From Amphiscolops sp. MND2022 (Eukaryota): a stretch of DNA of 64,000 bases. The stretch covers positions 57,102,001 to 57,166,000 of the forward strand of contig OZ076411.1 in NCBI GenBank assembly GCA_964187785.1, written 5' to 3'. Positions 7,425-47,375 of this stretch are shown piece by piece. Under the pieces are notes generated by a model. The model had not been told where the DNA came from, searched no databases, and saw only the letters and a list, made by a program, of their open reading frames with translations. Position 1 is the first letter of the stretch. Each line of letters begins with the position of its first letter. Position numbers and translations under genes: made by a program.

Positions 7425-7859
7425 TTTGAGTGAAAAAAACTCGGAAAGTCAGTTGACTGAACCCAGTCAGTTCAGCAATGAAATTCAAGTATGGTCACAA
7501 ATTATGGAAGAAAAGAATGATGACAAAATTGAAAAAATGAGAGAAGAATTGGGCAATAAACTAGAGGCTACCTTGAGAGAAGTTAAGTCTAACATAAACT
7601 ACATCAACAGTAACAAACCCAAGATCAGAAAACAACGAAATACAAGATTCACAACCGTCGGGATCCAAAACAAATAGATCTATTGGAGTTCGCACATCTA
7701 ATATTGAAAACTCAGGTTCAGAAAACGACGATTATCCTCTAAGAGCTTCAGAAATGAAAGACTTGAAACATCCGGCAAAACCAATTTTTCAAAACGAATC
7801 CAATATAGACAAAACGATACATTCAAACAAAAAATCCGACGCAGAAGAGGATTATCACA
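7425..7859 (+). repeat. G1 5' LTR, 3' part only, ending ...TATCACA
   Basis: Homologous to the end of the 3' LTR; CA terminus is immediately followed by TGG. Confidence 0.8.
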
Positions 7860-7873
7860 TGGTGACAGGAGCC
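7860..7873 (+). promoter_or_regulatory. G1 primer-binding site TGGTGACAGGAGCC
   Basis: Directly follows the LTR CA end; 13/14 identical to the G2 PBS. The cognate tRNA is not identified. Confidence 0.85.
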
Positions 7874-8948
7874 AACAGACAACTCAAAAGACAAAGTTCT
7901 CAAAAATTAAACGATAAAGTAGGATCCCACGCAGACCACAACTTGTCAAATTCGACAGTAAAACCACTTGACGCATTTAATCAAATTCCTTTGGCAATAG
8001 AAAAACTGGCGAAAAAAAAACTCCTCACAATCACTTTTTCGCCCAAAAAACATTAACATTTTATGAAAAAAAACAAGAAAAAGGAGAAATTTGAATACTT
8101 TGAAGACATATTTCACAGGACACTTCGAATGCACCAAACCTAACACAGGACATGAAAATTACCCATTTTCCTGCCCATCTCGGGGGTTTGGCGCTCAAGC
8201 CATTCAAGAACAAACAACGAAACCCAAACACGACTTCAGAAGAAATACTCAAAGTCTTTAGACGCCAATATGTGAAACCTGAGTCCAGTGCATCAGCAAA
8301 GCACAAATTCAACAGACGCTCATTTGACCCAGAAAATCAGAAACTTCCAGATTTTCTGGAAGAACTTCAAGAAAGTGCTGAAAAGCATTCGGGGATAACG
8401 CCCACCAAATGATAGAGAATTTGCTATACGCGAAAATGCCTCCTCGCCTTAAAAAGTCAATCGATCAAGCCTACCTCGAAAATGGCACATTTGATCGAGT
8501 AGTCAAACATCTTGAAAGAGAGATGGAACTTAACCGTCTTGAGGCAGACGAACTCCTCGTTAAAACCCAAATAACCGTTACCAAAGAGGATTAAAACACT
8601 GAAAAACCCAACAAAAAACAAAATCACAAAGCCAAAAAACAAACCAAAAACAGTACCTGATAAAACACTCGAAAATGACCAATGCCGTTATTGCAAGGAT
8701 GCCAACCACATGATGACTGACTGCCCCAAATCAGCAAAATGGCGCAAACTTGAAAAAAACCCGGATGCACCCAAATGCCCCAACTGCAAAACCCCGGTCC
8801 ATGATGAAAAAGATCCATGCTATTTTGGTGCCAATATGGATAATCAACCACCAAAACGGAATTTGACAGAAGCACAAAAGAAAGTTATAAAACTGTACAA
8901 GCAAGCTATAAAGCCAATGGAACGACATCAACAGTCCTCGTCAAATGA

Positions 8949-8955
8949 TTTAAAC
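8949..8955 (+). promoter_or_regulatory. Predicted -1 ribosomal frameshift slippery site U UUA AAC before the gag UAG
   Basis: X XXY YYZ heptamer in the gag frame. The -1 frame reads KLETPRLY, versus KLDSPRLC in G2. Confidence 0.65.
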
Positions 8956-9263
8956 TAGAAACGCCACGCCTTTACACAAAATCACCACAAACACCAAACC
9001 CAGCACCAGTTGAGCCCCAAACCCACAAAAACATCAGTTTGTGAAACTGACTTAAAAACAGAAAACTCAAAACAGTTAACTCTGGAAACTCAACCCGAAA
9101 ACTTATACGAACTCTTATATGACGCACCAGACAACTACTTTCCACAAGAATCAACCCACCCCGAAATCGACCCAACCTCAGTTATCCAACACACAACAAA
9201 ACACCACGTAACAATAAAAACTTCATGCAATGATGCAAAGCAACCCCTTTTAGATGAACATTA

Positions 9264-10291
9264 CAGTGCAGAGGCAAGCTATTTGGAATACGGGACACGA
9301 AAATTGAGAAATGTCGGAATCCAGGACAAAACTTCCCTTTGATGTTAAGCGTGTCTTAGATTCTTGTCCTGGATTCCACGACAATACTGCTGCTATAATG
9401 ACGCTTTTGCCGCTGCTCTCTGATTGGACCGCTGAATCTGGTAAGTTAAAATTTCAACATTGACGTACTAACCCCTTTGGTAGCTGGTTTCCTACAATTT
9501 AACATATGTATTCGGTTTTCCACAACACATGTATAGAAATATGGTCTTACTTTCCATAATAATTTTGAGACCAATTTCGTTTTATCAAAAGTCAGAGAGG
9601 CAAAGTGAGTCCATAATATCTTTCGTGCGAACAAAATGCTGGCCTATTAGTATTTTAATATGAAAAAATGTTTTGTGATATTTTGGTCCCAACCGTGAGT
9701 AAAAAAAGTACTCATGATTGGAAACAAAATTGCTCATTATCAATTTCACATTTGAATTACTTTTTTAACCAATTTTCGTTGCTATTACAAATCAGCGAGA
9801 TAAAATATGCAGCAAGTCATCAAATAATGGCAGATTATCATGATGTGGCAGTTTGTTCACAACTGGTAATAAACATTGAAAACACGAAAATTTGTGTAAT
9901 ATCGGCGTGTTAGTTTGAGTCATTTTGAAATAATATACAAGAAAAGTGCATAAAATTACATTTGTTCAGTCTTCCACTTGAATTTAACTCAAGAAGAGAT
10001 GCCGCGTATCGCGTCAAGCATAAAGTCGTGGAATCCAGGAATTTTATAATTTCTGAAATCTGATTTGTTCGTTATGCGAAAATTTACGTTTTTGTGGAAT
10101 CCGGGACAAAACGGCATGCCGACAGTGCGTACAGGTAAGCATTTGTTACTGGAATCCACGACAAAATCCGTGGAATTCGGGACTTATGACGTAATTTGCC
10201 AATTTTGCACAGTTAAAGGCATGATCGTGGAATGCGAGGTATTGAAAGCACGAAAGCGTGCTTCGAGCAAGTTTAGCTTGCCTATGTACTC
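9264..10291. mobile_element. Non-autonomous TIR element (Tc1/mariner-type MITE), copy A
   Basis: TIRs CAGTGCAGAGGCAAGCT ... AGCTTGCCTATGTACTC; TA on the left flank, CA on the right; reverse-complement match to copy B. Confidence 0.8.
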
Positions 10292-12730
10292 CAAAGAAGA
10301 TCTCACTGACTATATACAACTTGACAAGGAATGAAACTTGTCATACCTCCAAATCTCAACCTCTTTAACATGAAAGCGAAAGCGCCACATGTATTACATA
10401 CCGATGGACTTCAAAAACTCACACTTGATGGTCTCATTGATACAGGAGCCTTACAAGTGCAATCTCTGAACAAGACCTCAATAAAATCAAGCTGTTGGCA
10501 AACGAAGTCATTAACAAAACCGGTCCTCTGTCAAACTTTCAAATTATGGTGGCCAACGGACAACTAGAAGTCCCTATTGGTACAGTATTACTAGAATTTG
10601 AAGTAGCTGATTCCAAGTTAAAGGGAAATTTCATCATCATGAAAACTCTACCAAACCTGCTAATAGGATTGTCTTTCCTCCCGAGGAATAACTCAATTTT
10701 TGATGTCACTCAAGGCATCGTAACCTTCCCCTATTTTTCAATGCAGCTCAAGCCTGACACCCAAACATCGATACGGCAAGCAGCGCCATTGTTTGCTGAA
10801 AATACCTATACTTTACAATCAGGCGAACCTCTCGCCATTGCAAGCAGAATACTCCATCTTATGGACCATAACGCAACTGGAATAGTCATCCCATCACAAC
10901 AGTATGGAAACCATGATAGCATTTTCATCACTGCATCACTCACTATTGTTAACAACAATGCGGGTATCAAATTATCAATTTTTCGGAACTACCATACACA
11001 ATCACGATGGACACCCATTTATCGGATTTCAAGATATTTACCACAGAACAAATCAAACATATACATCCAGTAGACCCAGCATTGCTATGCTTCACGATAC
11101 AGCATGAGGATACAACAGAAGTCTACATAAATGAACTTCTCAAAGTACCACAACAAAATTCAGAGCAGGAAACATACTGGTTCCTTACCCATGAAGAACA
11201 AGGCAATCCCGCAACATATACTCCAATTCAGCAACGTATCTACAATGAGCTTCTCGAACAAAAAGAACTCGAGAAATTGAACCCAAACGATAACGACACA
11301 TCCAGTAAAGCATTACTTTCGAACTTCGACTGGTCCGACATAACAACGAGTGCCTCAGACTTTTAGTAGACCTCAGGAAGATTAACAACCTCATCGCTGA
11401 AGATTACACCAATAACAATCACCCGGTAAGCACTTTAACGGATGCAGCCTAACACAAGGCAGGGAAAAACTTTTCTGCAAATTGGATTGCTCACAGGCCT
11501 TCAGATGACAGATTACCAATTCATTCAAATGCTCGCTTTCAATTTTGCAAGTAGAACATTTGCTTATCGTCGCCTTGCTCAGGGTCTCAGCAGATCACTT
11601 TCTGCATTTTCAAGCGTTATGGGAGAGTACCTGGACAGAGCAATTAAAGCAGACCAATGTGCCCAATATGTCGATGACATTGGCATAGCAGCAAAGGACA
11701 CAAAACAATTTTGTACAAACATCAAAACTGTATTTGAATGCATACGCAATGCAGGATTAAAACTCTCAATGTCAAAAAACTACTTTAAAATCAAACAAGT
11801 CGACTTTTGGGGACGTACAATCACACCAAATGGAGTTGCCCATCAAGCCGACAAAGTGAAAAATTTCCTCTCAAAACTTCGCTTTCCCAAATCAAAAAAG
11901 GCTTTACAGAGGTATATCGGATTTTTAAACTATTACCGAAACTACATACCACGCCTTTCGGAACGGCTCTCTCCGTTTTTCAAACTCCTCATAGAAACCT
12001 CCAAATTGTACATACCAACAAATTTGGTGGAAGGCTTCACAAACCTCAACAAACTCCTAGAAAAGTCCTGCCAGTTAGCTTTAAAACAACCAATGAAAAA
12101 CAAGCATCTTATAGTCATGTCCGATGCAAGTTTCACAGCAGCAGGATATGCTATCATGATAGAAGACGACCCGAACCAAAAATTCCAATCCTAACGCAAA
12201 ACATATGCACCCTTAGCATTTGGTTCAAAAACTTTCAATCCAACAAAGACAAAATTGTCAATTTACGCAAAGGAATTTTTTCCATATACTTTGCATTTGT
12301 TGAATTTGGACACCTCATGTGGGGTAGTACCTTCCCAGTAATCGTTTTCACAGACAATCGTTCCGTAACCCGTTTTTCCAAACAAAAATGATCCTTCCAG
12401 CACTCTGGAATGCATGCGATTATGTCCTACAATACAATTTCGTCATCGCCCATGTTGCTGGATCAATGAACATTGCTGCCGACTTCTTATCTAGAACGGA
12501 AGTCGATTCAACCGAAAAACTGGAAATGTCCAATCGCAATGATATTCACACAAAAGCGATTGAAGTGAATATTCAATCATCCGGCATCGTCGAAGAAGAA
12601 AAAATTTATGTTCTCCCCGATTACGAAATTGATGAAAACAAATCATACGGAATCAAGCACAAACCGAACCACACAAGGACCTAGAAAACGCTGTTTCTGA
12701 GCTACAACAATTTCACAAACATACACATTA

Positions 12731-13448
12731 GAGCGCATAGGCAAGCTTAATTTGCTCAAACCATAATTTTGTGCTTTCAATACCTCGGATTCCACGACCA
12801 TACCTTTAACCATGCAAAATTGGCAAATACGTCATAAGTCCCGGATTCCACGGATTTTGTCATGGATTCCAGTAACAAATGCTTAGCTGTACGCACTGTC
12901 GGCATGCCGCTGTGTCCCGGATTCCACAAAAACATAAGTTTTTCAAAACGAACCAATCAGATTGCAGAAATCATAAATTTCCTGGATTCCACTTTGTGCT
13001 TGACGCGATACGCGGCATCTCTTCTTCAATTAAGTTCAAGTGGAAGACTGAACAAACAGAATTCTATGCACTATTTTTCGTAAATAAATTCAAAATGATT
13101 CAGACTAACACACCAATATTACACAAATATTCGTATTTTTCGAAGTTTAGAACCAGTTTTGAACAAACTGCCAGATCGTCACAATCTGCCATTATTTGAT
13201 GACATGCTGCAATTTTGGTACCAGTCATGACTATCGCTCTTCGTATTTTGGGTTTTTTTGTGTCAAAACAATTTCCATTGATATAAAATTGATTTAATTT
13301 AAATTCTTCTGCCTTTCCAATACCGATCACTCAAAATCAGCGGACCAATCAGAGAGCAGCGGCGAAAGCGTCAATAGAGCAGCAGCATTGGCGTGGAATC
13401 CAGTCCCGGATTCCACGAAAAGCAGCAAAATAGCTTGCCTGTGCACTG
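12731..13448. mobile_element. Same MITE family, copy B, inverted relative to copy A and shorter
   Basis: TA|GAGCGCATAGGCAAGCT ... AGCTTGCCTGTGCACTG|TA, giving a TA target duplication. Confidence 0.85.
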
Positions 13449-15082
13449 TAATGCATCAGGACTGACCTCCTGCTCCTCAGGATACTTCAAAGGCAAGGCA
13501 AGAATCTGCCTTGAGCAGAGTAATGACATAGTCCTTAGAAACCTGAGAAAAAATCGAAGAAAACCCTTTTGACGAAAATGAACTGGCATCAGACTATAGA
13601 TATCAGCACTACTTACAAAACATAACGCGAAAAGAGATGAAACAGAAAGTTCTCACTACCAAATCTGTCTACCAATCCAACTCCTAGAAGAATTTCATCA
13701 GGCTCTCCATGGTCATAATTCAAACCATCCCGGAATCATCAAGATGATTCAAGGAGCACGGCAAAAATATTACTACCCATGTATGGTAAAAGACATCAAA
13801 AAATGGTAAAATGGTTAGTAATTGCCAAATCTGCATCCAAACAAAACCAATCATAAACGATCTCCTCCGGAGAGAAATTTCCCATGGGATCTCGAACCGG
13901 AGGACATTTTGCAAATGGGAGTTTTACCAAACCTTCCCCCTAGTGGAGGCTACGACCATATCATCACAGCAATAGATTCTTCTCAAGATACTTGTTGGCC
14001 CCATGCATCACTCGGTTGTGAACCTTCACGAGTCTTCCATGGTAGAATACCACACAATATCCTAGAATACATAATCGGATATAACCCTAATCCACGATAA
14101 CCAACCGCAAGAAGATGTAGCAGAAAAATTTAAAAACGCATGAAAATCCTTCTAGTTCAAACTAAGAAGAACATCATGCAATCTTTTCTTGAATACAAAG
14201 CTTACTATGACTGCAAAGCGAAAGCAGCTCCGCTTTAAACGACCAATTATTGCTACATTCTTAACCCAAAGGCTGATACACAAGCGACAAAAATAGCATT
14301 TCGAGAATTCAGATGGTGCGGACCATATAAAACAGAAAAAGAACTCCCTAACAATAATTACAATGTCCGGAGACTTGGGACTAACAGAACGCAATTATTA
14401 TATGGGATTCGTCTGCGGAAATTCACTCCGCATGCGCCCTTAGCAGACATTTTTGTTCGTGAAACCGATGGGCAAAAAGATGACCAAATGCTTATAGCAA
14501 ACGATGATCTATATGCCCAATTATGGAACACAAATTTTGGGTCCAACACGTTCGACGATGGTCCTTCAGAATCTTCACAAAAGACAAAAGAAGCTGAAAA
14601 GATTCCGATTCAAATACCTGATGATAACCGCCCTCCCTCCCCAGGATCTTCAAAAAATAGTGAGGGCAGTCCAGTGGAACAGACCACTGAACCAGATCAA
14701 AATCATGAAACTCATGCAGATGGAAGTCAACAACAAATCAGTGAAGATGATCAAAATACTCAGAAAATCTCAGAAAGATACCAATGATTCATCAGAAGAT
14801 GACATTCAAAAATCCCCAAAAAACTACTAAAACACCCCGTTGCAAGAAGAACCAATGAATATCCGTGGCGAAAAATTCAACTTACGTCCTAATCCCAACC
14901 CAAACTACTCTGACTCTTACCGATACTAAGAAAAACTTGCAGGGGAAAAATTTCATCAACTTCCTTTTTTTCGTCGCCTTTTTACTAAACGTCCGCTTTT
15001 GATATGAATAAAAACAGTGATACAGCGGAAAACATCACAAACAAAATAAAAGTATTTAATAGTAAAAGTTATGGAAGGACAG

Positions 15083-18000
15083 TCAACAACTAGCTCTTTT
15101 GTTTTTGAACATCTTGGTGCTCAATTTTTTCGAGACAGGTTCTGTAACTCCGCTCGAACATCGATTCAGTGAAATGTTTGCCCGACTCAACGAAGGATCT
15201 GGAAAAGGACTGCTACCCACGCTGCTGGTCCTGCTCACGCGCGGGCTAGTAAAAATTAAACGACACGGGAGGCTTCTCATGGCGCAAAACGGCTTTCCTA
15301 TAACAGGTCTCCAGTTTCCCCAAGGCTGACCTTCGGTAACTACTCCCCTTTGAAAAGTTTAACACAGAAAACTTCTTGTCATAAATCAGGTCAGTTTCCC
15401 TCCCTAGCAAACGGAAAACTCTTCCAACGGCTTTCGGGTCTCTAAATAAACTTGAGACGTGAGGCACTGTCTGGTAGGAAATCTGAAGACTTCTTATACC
15501 AGACTGAAATAGATCTTTGACAGGAACCAAAATAGGGATAGGCACTATGAAAGAAGACGGCAGCTCCACAATTTGAGCCAGACACAGACACGAATGTTTG
15601 CATAACCGAAACAACTCCGGCCGGCATTGAATTTCATAGTGGGAAGCCGTAAAATGTATCCAATCGCTGTACTCGGGAACAGAACTGTCACGCAACTTTG
15701 ACAAAAACGAACGGTATTGGCTAACAGCCTTCACTTTGTCTTTCGGGGAGAGTAATCCAACAGACACGAAATGGGATGTCAATTTCTCAATAGCAGTATT
15801 GTAGAGTTCTTCAGGATTTTCAAGAATAACAGCAGGATCGGAAGCTGATAACCCTCTAATCAGGTCAGATTGAACAAAATTATGAGCCAGTAATTGCTTG
15901 CAGAAAATTTTGCAGAAACTAATTGATTGTTCCACAAAATTACTCGACCTGGGTAGTTGCTCGCAAGGACCAGCCTGTGAAAGTCCTCGTTCAGTACAAA
16001 CGCATCTGTTGACTTATACTGCAGTGTTGCTGAATCCAAATCTAACCTAAGGAAACAGTCCCAATTTGAAATGTTACCGAAAACACTATCGGGCAAAATG
16101 CTTTGCAATTGACTATAGGCGAAAACTGTAAACTGGTTAAATAGCCGGAAACCACCATCCATTTGCTTTTGCAATTCAGAGAATGCTGAATTATCTGAAA
16201 TATAACAAGCAGCTCTGAGTAACTGACAGCAAAACACCAGTCAATAGAAACCAAACATCAATTCTTACGCCGAAAAAGCTTGAATAATATAGCACGTGTG
16301 CATATACGTTAGCTATGACCATTGCTAGCACAATGGTGGAATGGAATTATACGTCACTATGCGGAATGAGGTGTGACGACTATACGTCAGTATGCGGTTT
16401 GAGCTGTGTTCAATACTCGTCACTATGCGGAACCAGTATGGTGTGACGACTATACGTCACTATACGATTTGAGCTGTGTCGACTACTCGTGACTATGCAG
16501 AAACAGTATAGTATGTCAACTACACGTCACTATGCGGTTCGAAATGTACTAACTACTCACCACTATGCGGAAGCATCAGAGTATAATGCAATACAATTTC
16601 GTTGCGCGGGAATAGTGAAGAGGACTAAACATTATTATGCAAAACGAGGTGATATGTTTGTTTACCACTATACAAAACAGACTAAGACGCTTATATAACA
16701 GAATGTGGAAAACGAACTAATAGGTATATATCATCAAGCGAATTAACGGATATACGATAAAATCTGAGCTCATTGGATGGACTAAAGTAGAAAACATTCA
16801 ATTAACTGTGGTCGAGGACGCATTTGATGATGAATAACCTGGCCAAGTACGCCGTATCCAGGCGGAAACATTCATTCAAAGTATTCAGCTGAAAGAAAGT
16901 TGGGAAATTAGGTGGTGAACATCAACTGTAACTAAATGAAGGAAAATAAAAATAACCTCTCTCATTTGAAAGCGGTAAACTGGGAGTCAAGCCATCTGAT
17001 TCAAATGTTCACGGACGTGGTTCCAGTTGCTGGACAGGACCTCAATCAAAACTGATGCCTCGGCAAGATAATATTCCAATTGGGTTACACTCTACAACAA
17101 AAATTAAAGTTGACAAAGAAAGAATCTATTATACGGAAGCGAAATGATTGGAAAATAAGGCCTTACCTTATGCAGCATTGGTAATTGCTGTAACCAGTCA
17201 CAATCGAGGGCAGGTCTGAGTTTCATTAACAGGAAATCCAGAATAGTTCTGTAACCATGCCGCTCGATTATTTGGACTGTCAGGGTGTCCAAGTTGCGTT
17301 CAAATTCGCTGGGTCCATTTGTGTAGATCACTGTAGGCCGGTTTGCCCCAGGCAAAGAGGTAGACAGACAATCACTAAGTTTGTCCTCAATGTTGATGAT
17401 GGATACACATGTCGGGTACGACTCGAAAAGACTGAGGAAAGATGAAATCAAGGTAAGGACGTTATTTGGAAGTAGCATTCCTCGAGGTGCTCCGCCGAGA
17501 CAAACCCGCTGGCAAACGTTACCGGCCCAGAAACAAAGCATAACATAAAACACCGTGCTGGTATGTTACATTGCAAGAGAATAATAACCAGAAGAAGTAA
17601 TCATCGAGACACAGTAGCCCATCAATTCTCGGAAGATGTAGGTCAGGATACCCTGCAACACAAACAACTTTAGTGTACTAAATAATCTGGGAGTGTACAA
17701 GAAGTACATGTAACCAAAATGGTACTTGAAACACTTAACTGAAGAAAAGTTACAGCAAAAGGTTGTCAGGATATAAGGAAGAGATGAAACTTACAAAAAG
17801 ACGTTCACGACTCCAATTCTGTATTGACAACCGGTCGCTGGATGTCAGACGCACAAGTTCGTCATACGTTCCTGATGGACTAGAAATGATCCCTCCGTGT
17901 TTCAAACCAAACTCAAGGATACTGATTTGAGAAAACACTTTGTCGGTGGGGCTACTTGCAACGCTGAAATCAGGGACTGACTCTTGTCCCACAAGAGGCC

Positions 18001-18964
18001 GGCAGGATAAATGTCCTTGGCTTTTTTCTTCGCCTCTTGTAGCGCGACTCCCAACATGTCAGTCTGATCTTTATCATAAGGGGCATCCCGGGCACTTCCA
18101 TACGTATACGGTGCTCCTTGATTAATTGAGCCTCCGAACGATATTGTGAAATTAGCTCAAGACTTCCGTGGATCATGAGGGACAGCTGCACTCTGCAAAC
18201 CCTGCACCGCCATTTATAAGGAGATTTTTCTTTATCCAAAGGTCCAGTGGCAGAGAACTTCAAAACTGGATGTTTCTTAAGCATGCTTCCAGTTAAAGAA
18301 TATTTTGCTCGACGTCGTTTCATACGGGATAACGAAGTAATTTGTCCCGTTTCCTGTAGAATTGCCCTAGAGTCAGTGTGCGTTGATACTTCTTCTTGAC
18401 TAGAAGTGGCCAGCATGGTTGTTGGCGCTAGGTCATCCACAATTGCTAATCCCATGGGCTGATGTAGATCGATTTCCTCTCCAGTGAGGAAAGCTGGTGG
18501 GATTCTATCTAACACGTTTGACAAGACGAGAATCTCCTGTCTGGTTAAGCTAAGAGTAGGAAGCCCCGCATCCGCGTGACCAGGATCTTCCGGAGCATGT
18601 TGAATGTCTTTTTGTAAACGTATGTTTTCCGAACCCAGTGTAACATCTAGCCCAACCTTAGGTGAAGTTGAGGAGTTGAGGGAACATCATCATTGTCTTC
18701 AGTCTGGTGTAGAACTTGACTAAATGGAAGCGAAGGTGTCTGCGAACAGCATTGGGGAATCAAATCTTTAAACATACCTTGGGTAGAATTATCAAGCGTA
18801 TTGTCCACTGTTCTCAAAGGAGTTGTGGCTGTTGGAGAACCTGAAGTGGATTCTGCAGATGGATCTTTACCCTGGCGTTGATTTACGGTAGAGGTTGGAT
18901 CAGGGTCTTCGCCTAGAGGAAGATTAGGGGAAGTCTCAACTGCTATTCCTTCGACAATCTGCAA
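15083..18964 (-). pseudogene. G1 antisense accessory gene (zinc finger plus hAT-like body), spliced and decayed
   Basis: Exon 1 ends at 17795 (RERLF|GTAAGT). Exon 2 is 17652-17167, exon 3 is 17091-16957, exon 4 is 16888-16807. The last exon (~16260-15083) contains YRSFLSKLR and RPELFRLCKHSCLCL. In-frame stops and frameshifts are present; the 5' end and last acceptor are uncertain. Confidence 0.85.
16348..16572. repeat. Minisatellite of TACGTCACTATGCGG / GTGACG-N6-CGTCA units in intron 4 of the antisense gene
   Basis: About 7 degenerate units; inverted TGACG half-sites at 16373-16390 and 16443-16460. Confidence 0.85.
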
Positions 18965-19907: not shown

Positions 19908-20072
19908 GTATGCGGCAGTATGCGGATCGACTAATGACGAGTATGCGGCAGTATGCGGAATTGCAGTGAAGACTATGCGGTATTATGCGGAATTGCAGTA
20001 TAGACTATCTGGCAGTATGCGGAATTGCAGTCGAAGACTATGCGGAAATACGCTGATCGAGTAGTGACGCAA
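19908..20072. repeat. TATGCGG array in the gap between the divergent antisense gene and ORF3 of G1
   Basis: About 8 TATGCGG copies, ending in GAGTAGTGACGC, which is also present in the LTR. Confidence 0.8.
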
Positions 20073-20289
20073 ACTCGGCATCCTACAGTTTTCGCTGTAT
20101 GCTTTCAAAGAGATGGAATTTTACTGCTAGTGGTTGGAATTGAATGAATAAGGCAGTATCACGTAATGTGATCAAGAAAGTACACACTTTCAATGACAAA
20201 CATGTGCGATAATGTTGATGTTTGATATACAAAGCCAGTGCTCTTTTGAACTTAATATGTTTGCAGAAGTTCAGACTGGTGGCAGCTCA

Positions 20290-22687: not shown

Positions 22688-22873
22688 AGTCATTTTCCGC
22701 AAATAGTGTCCGTGTCTGCTCACTAAGATGTCCCAAGAATGGCATAAACGGAATGTTCGACTATTTGAGATCCTCCCCCTCGGAAATTGAAGTACTGAGC
22801 GAGTCTGGGGGAGAATTCATAGTGGAACCGGGAAATGTACAAGAACTGGGTGAAAGATTCCGCATTGGAGGCC

Positions 22874-38900: not shown

Positions 38901-40144
38901 CTCTTGTTTCCAGCCCCAGAATTTGGAGGGGTCGATTATTGGAGATGAGCTCTTCACCAGCCGACTAGGGCTTTTCCAACGATTGACACGGGATTGTTAG
39001 TTTTCTCCTTTCATTTCATGCGCATTTTATCTCATCGAACTGACCTTTGGTTTGTTTAGATGCTAACGCCTTTTCACTCAGTCTGTCGGGCCGGAGGGAT
39101 AGATCCTTTTATACGTATCGTCAACTCTGCCAATTTCTTTACAAACTTGCGCGACGATGTTCCACGCCACAAGATTTGCCTCCCGAGGAAAATTGGCCCG
39201 AAATTCTCAATTTGGAGTTGAGTACCACAACTGCGCTCAGTTTCACAATTTTTCTTTCCCGAGCCAAGTTTGGTTCCAAGTTGGATGCCTGCAAAATCAA
39301 AGCTGGACTTGACAGATTAGATAATTCCAACGCAGGGCTGTCCATCGGCACACTGTCCAATAGAAATAAAGAGGAGTTTGGAAGGGCAGCACGCAGTTAC
39401 GTCACCTTTTTATTTATTTCATTTCAGGAACTGAAGGGGCTAACTAATGACCTCGTTAAAAACTTGGGTTGCTTTGATTTGGAGATCCTTTTGCTTGGAC
39501 CCATTGCACACGCAACTTACTGTCATGCTCAATTATTTACCAGTTTCCGATTACGAGGCTACTTTACTACAGATCAGGAGACTGCAAGTGGTGAAGAATA
39601 TTTGTCTTTCCTGGATGATCTGAGACGTACTTATTCAGAATTGGCGCAGCCTACTTTACTGATTCCTGACACTGTTAAATTTCATGTTGAATTGCCTTCC
39701 CTGCATAGTCGTCCTTTGCTCTACAAACTTTTTCGTTTGGCGTGTTTGTGCCTAGATGAGCCGTTTCCTGTTCTGCCCAGTGTGAAATTTGGATCAGTGA
39801 GTTCTGACGATCCTACTAGCAGTCTTATTGACGAGATTTTACCCGTCCAGTCTTATTTTGCCAATGTACCTCACAGTATTGATGCTGTTACGACCGACCA
39901 ATCCGTATCTGATTTCCTTCGTCTAGAACCTGATTTCGCTGATGGCGGACTGAGTGATACATATTGTCCCTGGCACAGTGTTAACGTCTTTGGACGTTCC
40001 AAAATCCTTGAACAGCTATCTTCCGATCGTAGTAGGCCACAAACTTCTGTCAGTTTTGCTGTCAATAAAGTTGTTGAGAGCAGTAAGTCTCACGGGACGT
40101 CCAAGTCATCTCCCAAGAAGAGCAGTAAGCGTCCTAGTCAATAG
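35977..40144 (+). pseudogene. G2 antisense accessory gene, 5 exons (35977-38010, 38149-38634, 38703-38837, 38914-38995, 39060-40144), ~1270 codons, with three premature stops in exon 1
   Basis: All introns are GT-AG (138, 68, 76, 64 bp) and the frame is continuous after splicing. Zinc finger Cx2Cx16Hx5H at 37549-37629. In-frame stops at 36793, 37195 and 37489. The start codon is uncertain and the original stop may be at 40210. Confidence 0.88.
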
Positions 40145-40406
40145 TCCCCTAATAAAGAAGTGGTTCCATCCGCGAAGGCCTTGTTGACTCCTAGTAGCTC
40201 TAAAGTCTAATTGTACATAATGTACAATTGTGTGCTATATTTTGTATATTTGTTGGTTTATTTCTCATATTTATGTTCTTGTATTATCTGTTTGCTGTTT
40301 GGTTGAGTTTTGTCATTAATTTCGTTCAGCTGTGAGTCAGATCAGGCCCCATAAAAATACAAGTTGTTGAAAGAAGAACCACGGGGCAGTAAATTCAGTT
40401 TTCCTT

Positions 40407-43400
40407 CTAGTATCTGTGTTCATCAGTAAAGTTTGGAGTAGGGTTAGGACGTAGATTATATTTTCCTCCCCTGGGACTTTCATTTTCTACAACCATTTCA
40501 TCACTTTCATTGCTTTGCGGTCATAGTATTCTTTGTACTTTAAGTACGACTGCATGATGTTTTTCTTCGTTTTATCGATCAGAATTTGTGTACGTCGTTG
40601 TAATTCTTCGGCAAAATCCGTTGTTGGGAGAATTTTCGGGTTGGGATTTAAGCCCAACCGGTGGTCTAGAATGTTATACGGTACTCTTCCATGGAAAATT
40701 CTGGAAGGTTCGCATCCTAGACTTGAATGATAGGTCGTATTGTAGTTGAGGACAGCCAATGGTAGATACTTGTGCCATTGGCGACGGTATTCACCGGAAG
40801 CCATTTTTAGGTTGCCCTTAAGACTGGCATGAGTTCTCTCTAATTTACCTATCGTCTGAGGATGCTTCGTCGTTGCACATTTGATCTGAATACCCAGAAT
40901 TTTTGCGACCTCGTCGACTAGACGTGAAGTAAAGGCTGTTCCTTTGTCAGTAATCAGAGTTGTTGGTAAATATGCATGCCTTGTCATAATATCAATAAGT
41001 ACTCTTGCGGTACTAGAGGCTGAAGCGTCAACTACAGGATAGGCGAAGAGGTATCTTGAGAAGACATCCAGAGCAGTAATGACATTTTCATATCCCCCAC
41101 TCGGTGGGAGGTTAGGTAAAAGGTCAATTTGTAAGGCGTCTTCAGGACCAAGATCCCATTCAGGTAAATTAAGTAGTTCAGGCGTGATTGATGGGTTTTT
41201 GATTCTTTTGTCTTTTATGCAGATTTCACATCCTTGGACCTACTTTTGACGCTTTTTGCTATTCCAGGGTAGTAATATTTTTGACGAATTTCATAAAGCA
41301 TCTTGGAGATTCCTGGATGTTTATTCGTCATTCCATGTAGTGAGTGGAGTAGCTCCGACACAAGGTGTTTAGGTAAGAGCGCCTGTCTGTATAGGACTCT
41401 TCCTGTTTCGTCATAGTAGTCTCTAGTGACAACGTCATCCTGAACGGACAGACGGTCAATTTGACTGCAGTAATGTCAGAAGCGCGAATCTTGATGTAGA
41501 ATTGTTTCAGAAGATTCTTCTTTCTGCAGTTTGAGGCGTAACTGGTGTAAAACCACGTCGTTTTGTTGCTCAATAGCCATGGTGGTAGAAGTTGACAGCA
41601 TCTGCAAACTTGTCATTTGTGAAGAAGCACCCCTGTGGGCACTGAGTTTCTCTAGGGAGATATCAGGTAATTGATTTGTTGGATGAGACCTGGCGTCCTT
41701 TTTACGTTGCCAGATTTGTTCCTCAGTTTCCTCATCCTCTTCAGTGTAGAAAATTTGGTCTTCTTCTGTCACTCCGGCCGATTGGACGTTGAGTTCAATG
41801 GGAGTGGTTGATATATCTTCGCGTATACGGAGTACAAGTTTTTCTTTAGGACAAAGCTCCAAACGAGACAAATAGTCTGCTGCGGTGTTATTTTTGCCTG
41901 GTATGTGGGCAATTGTGAAACTGAACTGAATAACGTAGTCACACGCGTTCCACAGGGTTGGTGGAATGATTTTAGTTTGGAAAAAGCGAGTGACCGACTT
42001 GTTGTCTGTTAGGATTATCACCGGTTTCAGGGTCCCCCAAAAGATATGCCCAAATTCCTTGAATGCGAAGAATATCGCTAAGAACTCTTTCGCTTAGATA
42101 GACATTTTCAGTTCGGTGGGACTAAAGGTCTTGGATCCATATGCTACGGGTGCGAAAGACTTTCGCGTTGAAGTATACTTCTCACTTGGATCGTCCTCGA
42201 TGAGAACTGCGTAACCTGTCGCCAAGAAGCTAGCATCAGTCATTAATGCTATCTGCTTATTAGGCAGAGGTTGTTTGAGTGCAAGTTCACAACATCGGTC
42301 AAGAGCTTTGTTGATCTCGGTGAATTGTTCTAACAGATCGGGTGTCACTATGACTTTGGCATCGTTTTTCAGTAGTTTGAAGAATGGTGTAAGTTTCTCT
42401 GACAGCCTTGGGATATAATTGCGATAATAATTGAGGAATCCCAAGTATCGCTCGAGAGCCGTTTTGGTTTTGGGAAATTTGGTCTTCTCTAGGAAGTTTT
42501 GGACTCTGGGTCGTTGTGGCCGCACTCCTTCAGGAGTGATGGTACGTCCCAGAAAGTCGATTTCCTTGGCGCCAAAGTGGCATTTGTGCATCGTGAGTTT
42601 GAGACCTGCAGTCCGGGTGCACTGAAACGTAGCTGTAAGGTTTCGAATCAGCTGCTCAGCAGTGTTTGCCGCGATTCCGATATCATCGACGTCCTGTGCG
42701 CATTGGTCAGCTTTGATCACCTTGTCTAAATAGCTCGAAAAAGCAGAAAGAGCTCTGCTGAGACCTTGCGCCAATCTGCGGTATGCGAATGTCCTGCTAG
42801 CAAAATTGAATGCAAGCATCTCGATGGACCTCTGGTCCGCCATTTGTAGACAATGATATGCCTGCGAACAATCTAATTTACAGAACAGGCGTTTGCCTGC
42901 CATGTGCTGTGCGGCGTCCGTTAAAGTACTCAAAGGATGATTGTTGTTGATATAATCATCAGAGATCAAATATTTGATCTTGCGAAGATCGACCAAGAGT
43001 CGTAATTTGCAATTTGGTTTTTTCTGGGCAAAGATTGGACTTGCATATTTAGAGAATGGAAGTGTGGTTATGATTCCATATCGATGTAGGAGGGCTATTT
43101 CGACGAGAATATCTTCTTTGAGATTAATTGGCGTTAGAAGGCTTTGACTATAAGCTGGGGATTCGTCTTTAGGTGTGAGCTTGACCTTGAATTCCTCGTT
43201 CATGCCTATATCAAATCGGTGTCTCGCAAATATGTCATGAAATTCGCCGAGTAACTCTTCAATTTGGGTGATTTCAGCTGGTTGCAACGTAGAGTCTGTC
43301 CAGTCAAAATTGGCAAGGAATTGGTTTCTAGACTCAGGGTCATCCTGAGGGTTGAGTTTTTCCAGTTCCTGGAGGTTTTGTAGTTCCTTCAGGATTCGTT

Positions 43401-44860
43401 GCTGAATCGGGGTATGGAGCTGAGGGTCTCCAGGTTCTTCTGGTGTAGGAAACTAGTAGTTTTCTTGGTCTTCCCCAGTCCCTGTAGATTGAATCAAACT
43501 GCTTGCGTAATAGGCAGCATTTTCTGGATTATCTTGCAGGAGGTGCCATGTGGTAACCGCGTCAATGGGTTTGACGTACTTCATTTGCTCTGGCGTCATG
43601 ACAGAAAAAGTGGCAATGTCCGAACCCCGTTTGAGGGTATATGGCTGATCAGTGAAATTATTCACGTGGATCGAAACCTGACCTTGGGTCAGTGTGACTA
43701 GAGCGGCGCAAAAGGCTATATCACCGTCCTCAGTGAGGGCGTTGCTCAGTTGGAGGATTCCGGTGACATTAGTGTCAGCATATATATTGGAGTACATGGA
43801 GACCACGTGTCTGTCATTGGGCGGGATAATATTGTCCTCGCGTATAGTGACAGGTTCCATGACGTTAGTGTACTTGTGGTCCGCTGTCTTCAACTGCATA
43901 GAAAAGAATTGGAATATTAAAACTCCCTGCCTCATGTCCAATATAGTATTATTCCTTTGAGGAATGAAAGACCAATTAGCGGACTTGTGAGCCTTTCCAT
44001 GACTATGAATATCTCGTGGAATTCGATGTCCCCGACTTCAAATTTGAGTTCAACAGTGCTCTTTGGGGTTTCCAGTTGTCCATTGGCAACCATTATCTGG
44101 AAGTTGGGTGCTGGTCCCTCTTTGACTATCGACTGGGGGGCTAATAATCGGATTTTACGTAGATCAGCTTCTGGGATCGCACTAGATAGAGCTCCCGTGT
44201 CTACTAGGCCATCTAATGTTAGTTCGCCAAAATCCATGGGAAAATAAAGCATACGTCTCTTATACTTTAGTCCAAGATTTGATGTCAACGGAACATAATC
44301 GGGTTCACCGTCTCGTGAGATTAGGATGTTCACAAATCGTTCCTCTACGGTTGCAGTCAATGTGACCACAGGTCCATTTTGAGAGAACTCTTTCGGTGGG
44401 TCTTCCTGAGTGACCAAATTGGTGGCAGCCCATTCCTCTTGCCAAGGGTCTACGAGAGCCTTGGTCAGAGCTGGGTTGAGATTTTTGTCGATTTCGTTGG
44501 AATCTAGTTCTGTTTCCAAAGGGTTTTTGTGGAAATTGGTATAGAAATGGAGGTGATGTTGGTTGTAGATCTGAGCGTCCCAACAAGGATCGAAACCGAG
44601 ATCTTTATCGCGGTAGTATAGGTTATAGTCATCTATAGGAGGTAGAGGTCGGATAGTAGTAGTATTACCTTGCAGTCTGTCGGACTGATGGTCCAAGTCA
44701 ATTAAATTGGTGGGAGTATTTTTCACCTGCTGCTGCCAGTCAGCTGATGAGTTTGCTTTAAGGGATGAGTAGTATTCGATGTAATATATAGTAGAAGGGT
44801 CAGAAATTATGTACTGTCTGACGCGTAGTTTACCATTAAAGCAGAGTCGTGGCGAATCTA
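40407..44860 (-). pseudogene. pol: G2 pol (protease, RT, RNase H, integrase with C-terminal deletion)
   Basis: LVDTGA; RLLVDLRK, FAYRRLAQGL, DVDDIG (YVDD mutated); MTDASF; HPGISKM; TDKGTAF...KLERTH; ends KYNLRPNPTPNFTDEHRY*. Confidence 0.95.
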
Positions 44861-44867
44861 GTTTTTT
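44861..44867 (-). promoter_or_regulatory. Predicted -1 frameshift slippery site A AAA AAC before the gag UAG
   Basis: The -1 frame is open from this site through the protease ORF to 43932. Confidence 0.75.
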
Positions 44868-45994
44868 GGGTTTTTGAGGATAGACGTGGTGGGTTTGTTA
44901 TTGTTGGAGTCATCTTGACTCATAGTAGTTTCTCCTGGTTTGGAATTTTCCAAATTGAGGTTTTTGGGCTTGAGGTGAGCTCCAGCGCCTTTCCAACATC
45001 GTTCCGCCGGGTGATTTGTTTTGTCGCAAGTCGGACATTTTGGATATTCTTTCTTGGTGTCCTGCCCTTCAATGCGGCGTTGTTCCTCCTTTCTTTTGAG
45101 TTTGCGGCAGTCGTCTTTGACATGCCCGGGTTTTTTGCAGTAATTGCAAGTAATTTTTGGGTCAATGCCAGATGAGAGGAGGCCAGTACCCGGTCGTGTT
45201 GTTGTCGGGGCTGTGGACATTGTGGGGACGTGGATGTCGTCGCTTTCCTCAAGTCCATTCAACTCCAATTCACGTTCGAGGTGTGTGACAATCTCTGCGT
45301 AGGTCGCATTTTCAAGTCGCGCCATATTGACTGAGCGTTTCAGTTTGGGCGGCAGTTTAGCATAAAGCAGACTGTCAATCATTGCTTGAGCATGTTCCCT
45401 AAAGGCTTTTTCAGCTCCTTGGTTAAGTTCTTCAAGGAAATCGGGCAATTTCATAGTATTCGGGTCAAATACTAGTTTATGCCACTTGTGTTTGGCAGTT
45501 GCCTGAGACTCAGCTTTGACATATTTCCTACGGAAGACCGCTAGTATATCTTCCAAGGTTTGTCAATTGGTTGAATTGATGTTACGGAATGTCTGTAGAG
45601 CGTTTTTGCGTAGCAATGAGTGAAAATGGTTGATTTTCATTGTTTCCGTGATGTCTGGTTGCATTTTTATCATCGTATGAAAAAGATCTTCAAACAGTTC
45701 AAATTTTTCAGATTTGCCATCAAATGTCAGTGTTGTCGTACTAAATGGTCGTACCATCAGTGTCTGTGCTGATGGTTTGTTGTTCATACCCATAATCACG
45801 TCAGCAAGTCGATTAATGGGGTCTATTGTTGGTTCGGAAGGTACATCTCGGTTATTGGTGGGGACTGTTGGGAATTGCGCCGGGATGGTTGTGTCAAGCG
45901 TATCGTCGGTGACACACTGTTGGTGTGAACTTTTATTTCGAAATTGCATGGGCCGTCCGGTCAGGAACTCAGGGACCATTTGAGGGGTAAGGTT

Positions 45995-46008
45995 GGCTCC
46001 TGTTACCA
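45995..46008 (-). promoter_or_regulatory. G2 primer-binding site TGGTAACAGGAGCC, translated within gag as MVTGA
   Basis: Immediately follows the LTR end ...TTACGACA. Confidence 0.9.
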
Positions 46009-47344
46009 TGTCGTAACCGTCGTCTTCATCACTATGATAAGAATCTACTGAATTCTCTCTCTGACGATTTATATGGTTACTATTCGTCCCTACTGTCCTA
46101 GGGAAGTCTTTCTTGACGTCCAGGGACGTTTTACCAGCGATTTGCTGATGCGGTCCATCTGACCTTAGGTCCCTATGTGGACGTACTTGTTCAAAAGTAT
46201 TCGGATGCGGTCCATCTGACCTTAGGTCCAAATGAGTATTTTGGCTTTTTAACACGTTCCTGATGCTAGGAATCACTTTTTTTTCAATTGCTGAGTCTAT
46301 TGCATTTAAAATATGCGAAGTAAGATCAGATCTCATTTCTTCTATTTTCCTGGACATTTGCGAAGAAATTTCTGAATTTATTGCTCTACTAGTTTCAACT
46401 GTAATTTCACTATTTTCACTTGCATTAGTATTCAATAAAGTCCAAAAATTCCCACTAATTGAGTTAACTTCCTTGTTGGATTTCCTTGAGTCTAAATTTA
46501 GACCAGTATCGCTAAGGTTTTCATCTCTAACTTGATCACTCTCTTGGTAATTTCCCAACATTATATCTAAATTCTCAATATCTGACATAACGTCTGCATG
46601 TCTGGAACGCTTCTCTCTAGCTTTCTGCTTTCTAGTCGAAGGCATAACAGTGGATTTGATGTTTCAACAGTGAATTCACTAATATCAATGTCAAATCAAA
46701 GTAGTCGTGTATCGTATATCAGTAATATCAATAATGATCCTTTCAACAACGGGTTCCTGGTATATATAGTTGCAGGGCCAAGACAATCATTATTTAGGAC
46801 GTCAAGGTCCGAAAATATACGTGACGTCATGTTTACTATAAATAGCTGAAGATAGACTAAACGTCATTTTACGTCAGCAGCTATAAATAGAATTAGAACA
46901 AGTTTAACTAGCTAACAGGCAACTTTGGTGACTACATGTGCATGACACTACGTCTTGTCAAACTAAACTAATCAACGGTTGAAATGCATGAAGAGGCATG
47001 GTGACCTAACGTCAGAGTGACTGCACTAAAGCACTGTGATTATAGGTAGCACCGTATATATATGAACACTGTATGACAACGCGTCAACTAGACTGCAACG
47101 GCGAGTAGTTGACGCATTTTATTTAACATTATGGCAAACAAAAAATATTGCAAGTACTTTCATGGGGTCAACGTGACCTTAGGTCAAAACAGTAAGATAA
47201 CTACTTTCATGACTAAATGATTGCTAAATTGGATTAATATTGACAATTTCATGTAAAACAATCTACATCAATCGTAGTTTGAGTTGTTTTAGTCTTCGGG
47301 CATGACTTGATATAGCAAACTGTCACAGGCGGCAGCCTGCGACA
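46009..47344 (-). repeat. G2 5' LTR (1336 bp; ~42-bp deletion relative to the 3' LTR near 47293)
   Basis: TGTCGCAGG...GACA; the deletion is flanked by AGT microhomology. Confidence 0.95.
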
Positions 47345-47375
47345 GTGGATGATGAATGTCATTGTAATTCCGAAA

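Follow-up and report, generated by a model that had tools for sequence, protein, structure and literature searches.

The window, i.e., the whole stretch of 64,000 nucleotides of contig OZ076411.1 from Amphiscolops sp. MND2022 that was analysed, contains two dead copies, G1 and G2, that, judged by sequence, belong to a large clade of Ty3/Gypsy LTR retrotransposons, about 15-16 kb in length and active until recently. Very probably, this clade is characterised by a heritable anatomy in which a four-exon gene antisense to gag-pol and a sense gene, ORF3, follow pol.

The better-preserved element, G2, occupies positions 32058-47344 on the minus strand and is flanked by a 5-bp target-site duplication, TCCAC (5' copy at 47345-47349, the same pentamer at 32053-32057). 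Its 5' LTR (46009-47344, minus strand, 1336 bp) begins with TGTCGCA and terminates with CA, the 3' LTR (32058-33436, minus strand, 1379 bp) exceeds it by 43 nt, and the pair is 97.7% identical in a self-BLAST. The polypurine tract (PPT) GGGGAAA (33436-33442, minus strand) adjoins the 3' LTR, and the PBS TGGTAACAGGAGCCAAC (45992-46008, minus strand), which is common to G1, G2, and the related copy L001, lies within the sequence translated as Gag. The gag ATG of G2, at 46645, is situated inside the 5' LTR, about 120 nt downstream of a TATA-like stretch, TATATATAC (46760-46768), which is also seen in L001 and L004 (alignment A4). These two relatives are young copies in which every gene is open, with LTRs 98.9% (L001) and 99.9% (L004) identical. 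Yeast Ty1 resembles G2 in that its 5' LTR contains the start of the gag frame and its PBS is part of coding sequence; it belongs to Ty1/copia, however, orders its pol domains differently, and has no accessory genes.

Gag of G2 (44858-46645, minus strand) comprises a DUF1759-like capsid region and a CCHC zinc knuckle (Pfam), contains one in-frame stop, and is 73% identical over its full length to the intact Gag of L001. Pol follows in the -1 frame relative to gag, with the heptamer AAAAAAC immediately 5' of the gag stop. In G2, pol (40410-44849, minus strand) encodes PR, a weak dUTPase, RT, RNase H, and IN (Pfam), but contains four in-frame stops and three frame changes and has lost about 240 residues at its C-terminus; its identity to the intact L001 pol is 77-87%. 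The L001 protein has the domain order PR (residues 207-301), dUTPase (336-417), RT (612-777), RNase H (848-981), and IN (1166-1337), and the order PR-RT-RNase H-IN is the same in G2 (Pfam). The dUTPase of L001, placed between PR and RT, matches PF00692 with 24.9 bits at a cut-off of 22, whereas the G2 match stays below that cut-off with 17.2 bits. With similarity to solved structures taken as a proxy in place of a tree, the best match of pol is Ty3 Gag-Pol (154 bits), followed by foamy-virus PR-RT (104 bits), and the Pfam families found, RT_RNaseH_2 and Integrase_H2C2, are typical of Ty3/gypsy. The interval from pol to the LTR contains no env-like ORF, and none of the ORFs located there has a transmembrane segment (maximum 19-residue hydropathy 1.45).

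On the opposite strand of G2, and converging on pol, lies an accessory gene of 1229 codons (35977-40144, plus strand) with four exons (35977-38010, 38149-38634, 38914-38995, and 39060-40144) separated by introns of 138, 279, and 64 nt. It carries three in-frame stops and zero frameshifts. We infer the splice sites from conservation: three canonical GT-AG introns are placed at the exact ends of protein homology in 5-7 copies, with GTAAGT, GTACGT, GTAAGG, GTTAGT, and similar donors and polypyrimidine-YAG acceptors. Exon 2 measures 486 nt and exon 3 82 nt in each of L001, L004, and G2, the same acceptors are found in L007, which stems from another sample, and intron 3 is precisely missing in the lineage of L003 and L006. 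Joining the exons yields uninterrupted frames with no internal stop in L001 (1224 codons) and L004 (1287 codons); the exon-1 proteins of these two copies are merely 44% identical, yet both genes are open. For the largest antisense exons, 108 and 44 homologues were identified, and 25 of the 44 exon-1 homologues are at least 640 aa long at 40-68% identity; all homologues of antisense exons and of pol come from ENA assemblies. A canonical AATAAA is missing after the antisense stop in four of five copies. Neither the splicing of this gene nor the start of gag inside the LTR had been mentioned in a sequence-only reading of this DNA.

The predicted antisense protein of about 1,225-1,290 aa is acidic and disordered in its N-terminal third, is helical in its C-terminal part, and includes a basic segment. 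Within the basic segment, one weak C2H2-like zinc-finger signal (Pfam zf-C2H2_ZN292) occurs at the same place in three copies. The structural model of the large exon has a beta-beta-alpha unit at this place, but adds little to the case for a zinc finger because of its very low confidence (mean pLDDT 38.5, about 40-45 in that stretch); the model of the last exon displays a helical core with a pLDDT of about 80. Save for the weak C2H2-like signal, Pfam and PDB searches did not reveal a known domain or fold in the antisense protein, and a Foldseek comparison with the PDB gave zero matches at E ≤ 0.001. Transposase_28 (PF04195) is absent from all antisense exons of G2, L001, L004, and L007 (Pfam, E up to 1), and Pfam detects no transposase, RT, or other TE domain in the antisense region.

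ORF3 of G2 (33345-34160, minus strand) is intact with 271 codons and runs across the PPT into U3, so that its final 89 nt lie within the 3' LTR. Its product, 59% identical to that of L001 and about 175-275 aa long among relatives, is acidic, contains the cysteine motif C-x11-C-x2-C, and has in its C-terminal part a conserved domain of about 110 aa (alignment of six copies); it has no Pfam or PDB match. The cassette had earlier been called regulatory, a designation that finds no backing in domain or structure matches for either protein apart from the weak C2H2-like signal. A polypyrimidine-AG is conserved 15-20 nt upstream of the ORF3 ATG in three lineages; when the sense strand of five copies was scanned between -200 and +2300 relative to the gag ATG, no strong GTRAGT donor came up.

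ORF3 and the antisense gene are arranged head to head around a gap of 1.8 kb in G2 (34161-35976). Seven copies share a conserved non-coding block of about 170-190 nt immediately before the antisense ATG (alignment A3), and it is the only segment of the gap common to all lineages. In G2, this candidate internal promoter and 5' UTR (35800-35976, plus strand) abuts the ATG and contains the palindrome ACTTCCGGAAGT (35948-35959), while the rest of the gap (34161-35799) has no conserved ORF and is poorly conserved across lineages. An internal antisense promoter had been suggested before; the conserved block fits this idea, and on the grounds of its conservation and position we consider it somewhat probable that it acts as such.

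The second element, G1 (7424-22687, plus strand), is an older and badly decayed relative of G2. The repeated portion of its 5' LTR (7424-7859, plus strand) comprises only 436 bp, which are 91% identical to 22253-22687 and 24843-25277 and align with the gag-coding part of a G2-type LTR; from this alignment, the 436 bp probably represent the 3' part of a longer LTR, of which about 1.1 kb appears to be missing at the 5' end. The 3' LTR in the long-LTR reading would extend over 21144-22687 (plus strand), and only its segment 22253-22687 is repeated at the 5' end. G1 has an incomplete 5' LTR and no target-site duplication; the PBS TGGTGACAGGAGCCAAC is located at 7860-7876 (plus strand). A fragmentary gag remnant (7754-8865, plus strand) with two frame changes in the matched part and a pol remnant from PR to IN (10341-14598, plus strand) that, where matched, has eight frame changes as well as nine in-frame stops are homologous to those of G2 (RT 63% identical over 255 aa). 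Two copies of a 485-bp repeat are nested in G1 in inverted orientation (9802-10286 and 12736-13216), tandem-repeat arrays are found at 16348-16572, 19905-20045, and 21499-21680, and a tandem duplication with a unit of 2.59 kb has affected the 3' end, where 22874-25345 (plus strand) is a 99% copy of 20283-22754 and includes a third LTR copy. The sequence-only reading included neither the shortfall of the 5' LTR nor the nested insertions and the 3'-end duplication.

Its claim that two related Gypsy elements share one layout is borne out by the LTRs, target-site duplication, PBS, PPT, and gag-pol of G2 and the homologous gag-pol of G1, and both elements carry, in the same order, a gene on the opposite strand that converges on pol. 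In G1, this gene is a remnant (15573-19757, minus strand) recognised by protein homology and by splice sites at homologous points: homology to the last exon lies at 15573-15941, to exon 2 at 17155-17598, and to the zinc-finger part of exon 1 at 18096-18335, and the intron 1 donor (GTAAGT), the intron 1 acceptor, and the intron 2 donor (AAG|GTAAGG) are retained. Profiles of G2-type antisense proteins match G1 with E-values of 1.6e-13 (last exon) and 7.8e-7 (zinc-finger part), and a direct BLASTP between the G1 and G2 proteins gives 24% identity over 163 aa (E 3e-7). The accessory identity of about 20-25% estimated earlier holds for the alignable parts of the antisense protein; pairwise BLASTP finds no match for the G1 ORF3. 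A sense ORF3 ending inside the 3' LTR is likewise evident in G2 and marginal in G1, where a weak remnant (21028-21150, plus strand) is matched by the profile over 21028-21147 with an E-value of 0.09, the match stopping exactly at the TGTCGCA at 21144 that marks its end. Of the head-to-head gap, put at about 1.3-1.8 kb, the G2 value is confirmed and the gap of G1 is less well bounded.

The layout of antisense gene plus ORF3 was encountered in all ten related loci fetched, which come from four ENA assemblies, with identical position and orientation at every locus, and it co-occurs with pol across lineages in which pol identity falls to about 40-55%. It is therefore a heritable feature of a clade and not a nested insertion, in agreement with the lineage carrying a two-gene cassette that had been proposed. 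A search with the last-exon profile returned 758 clusters at 50% identity, and pol clusters have up to 1,547 members. For both accessory genes, dN/dS is 0.26-0.29 (G2 versus L002). Between L004 and L005, nucleotide identity is 65-68% in the accessory half and 85.6% in gag-pol. The faster change of the accessory proteins than of gag-pol is in keeping with interactions with host factors, although, going by these sequences, it could reflect weak constraint or recombination instead of host conflict.

Similar arrangements exist in other retroelements. The hbz gene of HTLV-1 is a protein-coding gene on the minus strand that starts in the 3' LTR, has one intron, and is spliced in one isoform, and the lentiviral nef ORF overlaps the PPT and U3. 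In the G1/G2 family, too, the minus strand of the provirus carries a protein-coding gene, and ORF3 overlaps the PPT and U3 as nef does. Unlike hbz, the antisense gene of the family starts in an internal region and contains three introns, and in contrast to complex retroviruses in general, the family lacks env and possesses a Ty3-type pol. Pfam searches and PDB sequence searches with the family's own proteins revealed no homology to retroviral accessory proteins (tas/bet, hbz, nef, and others), and pol, going by solved-structure matches, is closer to Ty3 than to Retroviridae. Studies on plant elements that also mention such retroviral antisense genes (PMC7264820; PMC11963269) describe antisense extra ORFs in Ty3/gypsy elements of the Tat type, i.e., maize Grande (gene23), rice RIRE2, Silene Retand, and PvRetro13, and also in Boty of Botrytis. 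The Grande antisense gene has its own promoter, and no introns are reported for plant antisense ORFs (PMC7264820; PMC11963269); Transposase_28 (PF04195) is encoded by the antisense ORF in 97% of Retand clusters (PMC11963269). [quoted passage not shown] The family differs from them by lacking Transposase_28, by the size of about 1,230 aa and the four exons of its antisense gene, by a second, sense gene over the PPT and U3, by a DUF1759-like gag that begins in the LTR, and by the presence of a dUTPase-like domain. A spliced accessory gene is known from Cer1 of C. elegans, whose rapidly diverging CERV protein has a Rev-like role, acts in trans on Cer1 RNA, and is translated from a spliced mRNA with several exons (PMC10309623), and the novelty earlier attributed to the cassette was to this extent overstated. 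CERV, however, is encoded on the sense strand with its first exons in the gag frame, whereas the multi-exon gene of the G1/G2 family is antisense. A dUTPase between PR and RT, rare in retrotransposons, is found in the bdelloid rotifer elements Juno, Vesta, and TelKA and in basidiomycete elements (PMC5408684); these elements share this position and variable extra ORFs downstream of pol with the G1/G2 family, but their ORF3 lies on the sense strand and encodes recognisable domains, the types being env-like, DEDDy, and GDSL. No antisense ORF is reported for them, 'antisense' there referring to small-RNA reads (PMC5408684). Antisense extra genes are thus known from plants, but no description of one that has introns and reaches this size was found; a repeat library may already list the family.

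To the best explanation as a whole, which joins the anatomy described above with the expression and role proposed below, we assign a probability of roughly 0.7. The antisense gene would be transcribed from an internal promoter formed by the conserved block before its ATG, and the transcript would be spliced and end in the convergent gap of roughly 200 nt before pol. The antisense introns lie opposite the genomic RNA and would therefore not be spliced from it but copied in each cycle, so that the antisense placement would let a retroelement retain an intron-bearing gene through reverse transcription. ORF3 might be expressed from the gap or from a subgenomic spliced RNA, with 3'-end formation by the 3' LTR. 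We propose, only tentatively, that the element is served in trans by both accessory proteins. The antisense protein might be a nuclear nucleic-acid-binding or adaptor factor that tunes expression of the element or counters host silencing, a role analogous in logic, not in sequence, to those of complex-retrovirus accessory proteins, plant antisense ORFs, and CERV of Cer1.

That the cassette is instead a separate mobile element, inserted in an ancestor or repeatedly in individual copies, seems very unlikely. The window is rich in nested repeats, G1 itself harbours two short nested insertions, and the L006 cassette adjoins an RT only 21-29% identical to L001 pol; however, the cassette has the same place and direction at all loci, is free of TE domains, has ORF3 welded to the PPT and LTR terminus, and in L001, where terminal inverted repeats of its own were looked for, none bound the region. 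An endogenous complex retrovirus (Retroviridae) that has lost env is hardly to be considered either: the positions of the antisense gene and of the ORF across PPT and U3, the -1 frameshift heptamer, the dUTPase-like domain, and foamy-virus PR-RT and IN as next best solved matches would suit it, but Ty3 Gag-Pol is the top match, the Pfam families of pol are those of Ty3/gypsy, both an env-like ORF and a transmembrane segment are absent, and the Pfam and PDB searches match no retroviral accessory protein family.

The antisense gene could also be a passenger, i.e., a host gene with introns that was captured once in antisense and is carried along without use to the element. Its introns, its own upstream block, and the lack of similarity to TE proteins are host-like traits, and it evolves far faster than gag-pol. 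We regard this as improbable, as some 1,230 codons are open in young copies of lineages whose exon-1 proteins are just 40-45% identical, dN/dS is about 0.27, the gene is present at pol identities of about 40-55% in four assemblies, and no homologue outside the element context was seen among the fetched loci. Little credence is likewise given to a role at the RNA level, in which the antisense transcript would form dsRNA with the genomic RNA and thereby feed small-RNA silencing or self-limitation, the ORF being secondary. Such a transcript would be complementary throughout its length to the 3' part of the genomic RNA, and a dsRNA possibility is discussed for plant antisense ORFs (PMC7264820), but the upkeep of a 3.7-kb spliced ORF, the exact exon lengths and phases, and a dN/dS below 1 would be left unexplained.

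The preferred reading of a retroelement with its own spliced antisense gene can be carried further to a form that we consider doubtful, namely an undescribed Ty3/Gypsy clade with a complex-retrovirus-like gene programme built from non-retroviral parts. One part would be an antisense gene for a zinc-finger protein of 1,230 aa, with three introns and an internal promoter, which passes intact through reverse transcription because the genomic RNA does not show its introns; the other would be a nef-positioned ORF fused to the PPT and U3, and the targets of both in trans would be the element or host defences. If true, no clearer case would be known of a retroelement stably inheriting a multi-exon gene, and the intron loss in one sublineage would be a trace of the element's own spliced mRNA.

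Self-comparison of the window reveals two LTR pairs, which delimit two copies of Ty3/Gypsy LTR retrotransposons, G1 on the plus strand (7424-22687) and G2 on the minus strand (32058-47344). G2 comprises 15,287 bp, and its LTRs of 1336 and 1379 bp are 97.7% identical, start with TGTCGCA, end with CA and are flanked on both sides by the 5-bp duplication TCCAC. The PBS TGGTAACAGGAGCCAAC follows directly after the 5' LTR and GGGGAAA directly precedes the 3' LTR. Pfam searches identify a DUF1759-like gag with a CCHC knuckle and a pol in the order protease, weak dUTPase, RT, RNase H, and integrase; in L001, one of ten related loci (L001-L010) fetched from ENA assemblies, the dUTPase match lies above the Pfam cut-off (24.9 vs 22 bits). 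Among solved structures, pol is most similar to Ty3 Gag-Pol (154 bits), followed by foamy-virus PR-RT (104 bits) and then by a caulimovirus polyprotein. G1 has the same PBS as G2 and a homologous gag-pol, with an RT 63% identical over 255 aa, and it is far more decayed, its repeated ends comprising only 436 bp at 91% identity. G1 can be read in two ways, either with a long 3' LTR (21144-22687) and a 5' LTR shortened by about 1.1 kb, or as a member of a short-LTR lineage. The 3' copy of the repeat starts right after the PPT-like AGGGAAA, and no target duplication was found around G1.

All sequences were aligned and compared as they stand, and exons were joined only at introns common to relatives in order to test splicing. 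Read in this way, G2 has one stop in gag; its pol contains four stops as well as three frame changes and has lost about 240 residues at the C terminus; the antisense gene has three stops and no frameshift, and ORF3 is intact. The matched parts of G1 pol contain eight frame changes and nine stops, and the other G1 genes are fragments. In G2 and in the young intact copies L001 and L004, the start of gag lies within the LTR, with a TATA-like stretch about 120 nt upstream, so that about 215 gag codons and the PBS are translated LTR/leader sequence. pol is in the -1 frame, and AAAAAAC is located immediately 5' of the gag stop in three intact copies (L001 16485-16510 and the equivalent place in L004 and L005), which makes it a candidate for a conserved slippery site for frameshifting. 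Searches with Rfam (gathering thresholds) and ARAGORN gave no match in the window or in L001-L008.

The window is rich in other repeats. A 2.59-kb tandem duplication (20283-22754 and 22874-25345, 99% identical) spans the end of the G1 internal region, the 3' LTR and 67 bp or more of flanking sequence, and is younger than G1, whose LTR remnants are 91% identical. A 485-bp inverted repeat within G1 (9802-10286 and 12736-13216, 87% identical) occupies two places where G1 exceeds G2 by 0.7-0.8 kb and has the look of a short element nested twice, once in each orientation. The two copies of a 108-bp direct repeat (90% identical) in the spacer between G1 and G2 (27184-27289 and 31206-31313) are separated by 4 kb and may be the termini of a further small element, and at 509-774 a 133-bp unit forms a perfect tandem duplication. 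ORFs flanking the elements are debris of other retroelements; three such remnants, all on the plus strand (6328-6546, 53164-53511, and 59493-59984), include two RT-like pieces, one 37% identical to L001 pol and the other matching RVT_1 (E 9e-15), and a DUF1759-like gag piece.

The sequence-only reading had proposed that both elements carry a gene on the strand opposite to pol. Direct BLASTP between the G1 and G2 products (24% identity over 163 aa, E 3e-7) confirms this. The largest plus-strand ORF of G2 (39047-40144) has 108 homologues, ranging from 91% down to 34% identity, and the 719-aa ORF of L001 has 44, 25 of which are at least 640 aa long and 40-68% identical. Profiles built from both homologue sets match the G1 minus strand with the order kept (last exon, E 1.6e-13; zinc-finger part, E 7.8e-7), and a middle segment is shared with G1 as well (tblastn, 28%, E 1.4e-8).

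In intact relatives the antisense region presents itself as three ORFs of about 715, 150, and 365 aa. A reading as three separate ORFs was rejected, as exons 2-4 have no conserved start codons and their relative frames vary between copies. Homology of the first-ORF protein ends exactly at GTAAGT or GTACGT, and the second segment is bounded by a polypyrimidine-YAG directly before its start and by AAG|GTRNNN at its end. A direct splice from exon 2 to exon 4 was likewise rejected, since it is out of phase, and this led to the finding of a conserved 82-nt exon 3 with its own acceptor and a GTTAGT or GTAAGT donor; the last exon begins after TTTAG or TTCAG. When the four exons are joined, a single open frame of 1224 codons results in L001 and of 1287 codons in L004, although the exon-1 proteins of these two young copies are only 44% identical. 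Exons 2 and 3 measure 486 and 82 nt, respectively, in L001, L004, and G2. The corresponding exons of G2 (35977-38010, 38149-38634, 38914-38995, and 39060-40144, plus strand) join in phase to 1229 codons, interrupted by three stops. Splice sites are also kept in other copies, with L007, from another assembly, retaining the acceptors of introns 1 and 2, and G1 retaining both sites of intron 1 plus the intron 2 donor. As judged from these comparisons, the opposite-strand gene is real, is one spliced gene and is common to G1 and G2, and the original two-element observation is thereby sharpened to a four-exon structure.

Introns that lie opposite to the genomic RNA strand cannot be spliced out of that RNA, and this would explain how the antisense introns persist through retrotransposition. 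In the lineage of L003 and L006, intron 3 is precisely missing (L003 10274-10400; L006 9082-9200) and the frame continues through, as would be expected after recombination with a copy of the spliced mRNA.

The second accessory gene, ORF3, lies on the sense strand and is open in G2 (33345-34160, 271 codons). Six copies can be aligned across a C-terminal domain, about 110 aa long, that contains a C-x11-C-x2-C motif. The frame extends across the PPT and 45-90 nt into the LTR, so that the conserved LTR terminus of the family is also coding. ORF3 is acidic (pI 4.3-5.1) and, having no hydrophobic segment, is not env-like. In G1, BLASTP for ORF3 was negative and a profile gave a marginal match (E 0.09) that ends at the TGTCGCA at 21144. 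A polypyrimidine-AG is located 15-20 nt upstream of the ORF3 ATG in three lineages, and no strong sense-strand splice donor for ORF3 was found near the gag start. The hexamer GTRAGT does not occur on the sense strand from -200 to +2300 around the gag ATG in any of five copies (G2, L001, L002, L004, and L005), perhaps because strong donors are avoided in the genomic RNA.

The head-to-head gap between ORF3 and the antisense gene varies from 0.5 to 1.8 kb depending on the lineage. Within it, a single block is conserved throughout the seven copies compared, namely the roughly 170-190 nt that immediately precede the antisense ATG (about 35800-35976 in G2). This block is better conserved than the adjoining coding sequence and contains in G2 the palindrome ACTTCCGGAAGT (35948-35959). 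Position and conservation fit a putative internal promoter together with a 5' UTR. The motifs of this block were not found in G1, and four of five copies have no AATAAA downstream of the antisense stop. G1 contains three arrays of an approximately 32-bp unit sharing ACTATGCGG, in antisense intron 2 (16348-16572), in the gap (19905-20045) and in the stretch that precedes the repeated part of the LTR (21499-21680); the motif recurs at three regulatory-looking places.

The sequence-only reading further held that this cassette of two genes belongs to a heritable lineage, and this part stands, with ten loci from four assemblies; the regulatory role that it gave the cassette counts only as a possibility. 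Six of them (L001-L006) come from ERZ25074608, L007 and L008 from ERZ1742291 (pol 63% identical to L001), L009 from ERZ26696514, and L010 from ERZ26859043 (pol about 40-55% identical). Wherever the flanks are covered, the antisense gene converges on pol in all ten, and ORF3 lies beyond it in those loci that extend that far. As no TIRs bound the cassette in L001, its origin as a nested transposable element was rejected. The last-exon profile finds 758 clusters at 50% identity, and pol clusters at 90% identity contain up to 1,547 sequences each. In L004 the LTRs are 99.9% identical and all genes are open, indicating that the family was recently active. Every homologue located is an ENA entry, and scans of IMG/VR and JGI metagenomes with both accessory-protein alignments found no relatives. 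In L006 (5325-8021 and 10369-12097), antisense exon 1 contains a threefold repeat of an 899-bp unit, and the cassette adjoins an RT/RNase H that is only 21-29% identical to L001 pol and is not accompanied by an integrase; this arrangement may be nested or chimeric.

Both accessory genes seem to be under constraint. Between G2 and L002, the dN/dS values of exon 4, exon 1, ORF3, and one piece of pol are 0.29, 0.26, 0.27, and 0.45, respectively; since both copies are decayed, these are upper bounds for the active lineage. Amino acid identity between G2 and L001 amounts to 85% for pol, 73% for gag, 59% for ORF3, and 53, 41, and 38% for antisense exons 2, 4, and 1, respectively. Similarly, L004 and L005 share 85.6% nucleotide identity in gag-pol but only 65-68% in the accessory half. 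Such divergence might be due either to much faster evolution of the accessory genes or to recombination of modules between lineages.

Pfam searches with all accessory exons and ORF3 from several copies found nothing beyond a weak C2H2 zinc-finger match, which occurs at the same place in three copies, within a basic stretch. The N-terminal third of the antisense protein is acidic and of low complexity. AlphaFold2 models exon 1 as mostly disordered (pLDDT 38.5) and draws a beta-beta-alpha unit at the zinc-finger site with very low confidence; the zinc-finger call rests on the Pfam matches, and the model is a low-confidence hint only. For the last exon, a helical core is predicted with moderate confidence and has no fold neighbour in the PDB, and PDB sequence searches with exon 1, exon 4, and ORF3 gave no match. 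We propose that the antisense protein might act in trans for the element, probably in the nucleus, either by binding nucleic acid or as an adaptor, and that the ORF3 product might be another small factor.

The usual textbook picture of LTR retrotransposons is limited to gag and pol; extra genes, antisense ones especially, are known but functionally opaque. Retand elements possess pol-to-LTR regions of 2.9-6.6 kb with tandem arrays and antisense ORFs encoding a Transposase_28 domain (PMC11963269). In contrast, the family of G1 and G2 lacks Transposase_28 and by that criterion is not a member of Retand. Cer1 of C. elegans produces CERV from a five-exon sense mRNA, and CERV is needed for nuclear export of genomic RNA (PMC10309623). 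A dUTPase between PR and RT is reported to be rare and has been described in bdelloid and basidiomycete elements (PMC5408684). The novelty first claimed for the layout was overstated. Our searches, which covered full-text papers and not Repbase or Dfam, turned up neither this family nor any LTR retrotransposon described as having a multi-exon antisense gene.

The family seems to be an unusually clean case, combining many young copies, two constrained accessory genes, a putative internal promoter and a multi-exon antisense gene, and should be of solid interest to transposon biologists. It also exposes an annotation problem, in that automated gene prediction reports the antisense gene as three "hypothetical proteins", and all copies located lie in metagenome-style assemblies. 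Its antisense introns illustrate how orientation shields introns from loss in retrotransposition, and the family offers a natural system for studying how retrovirus-like regulatory complexity arises in retroelements independently of retroviruses.
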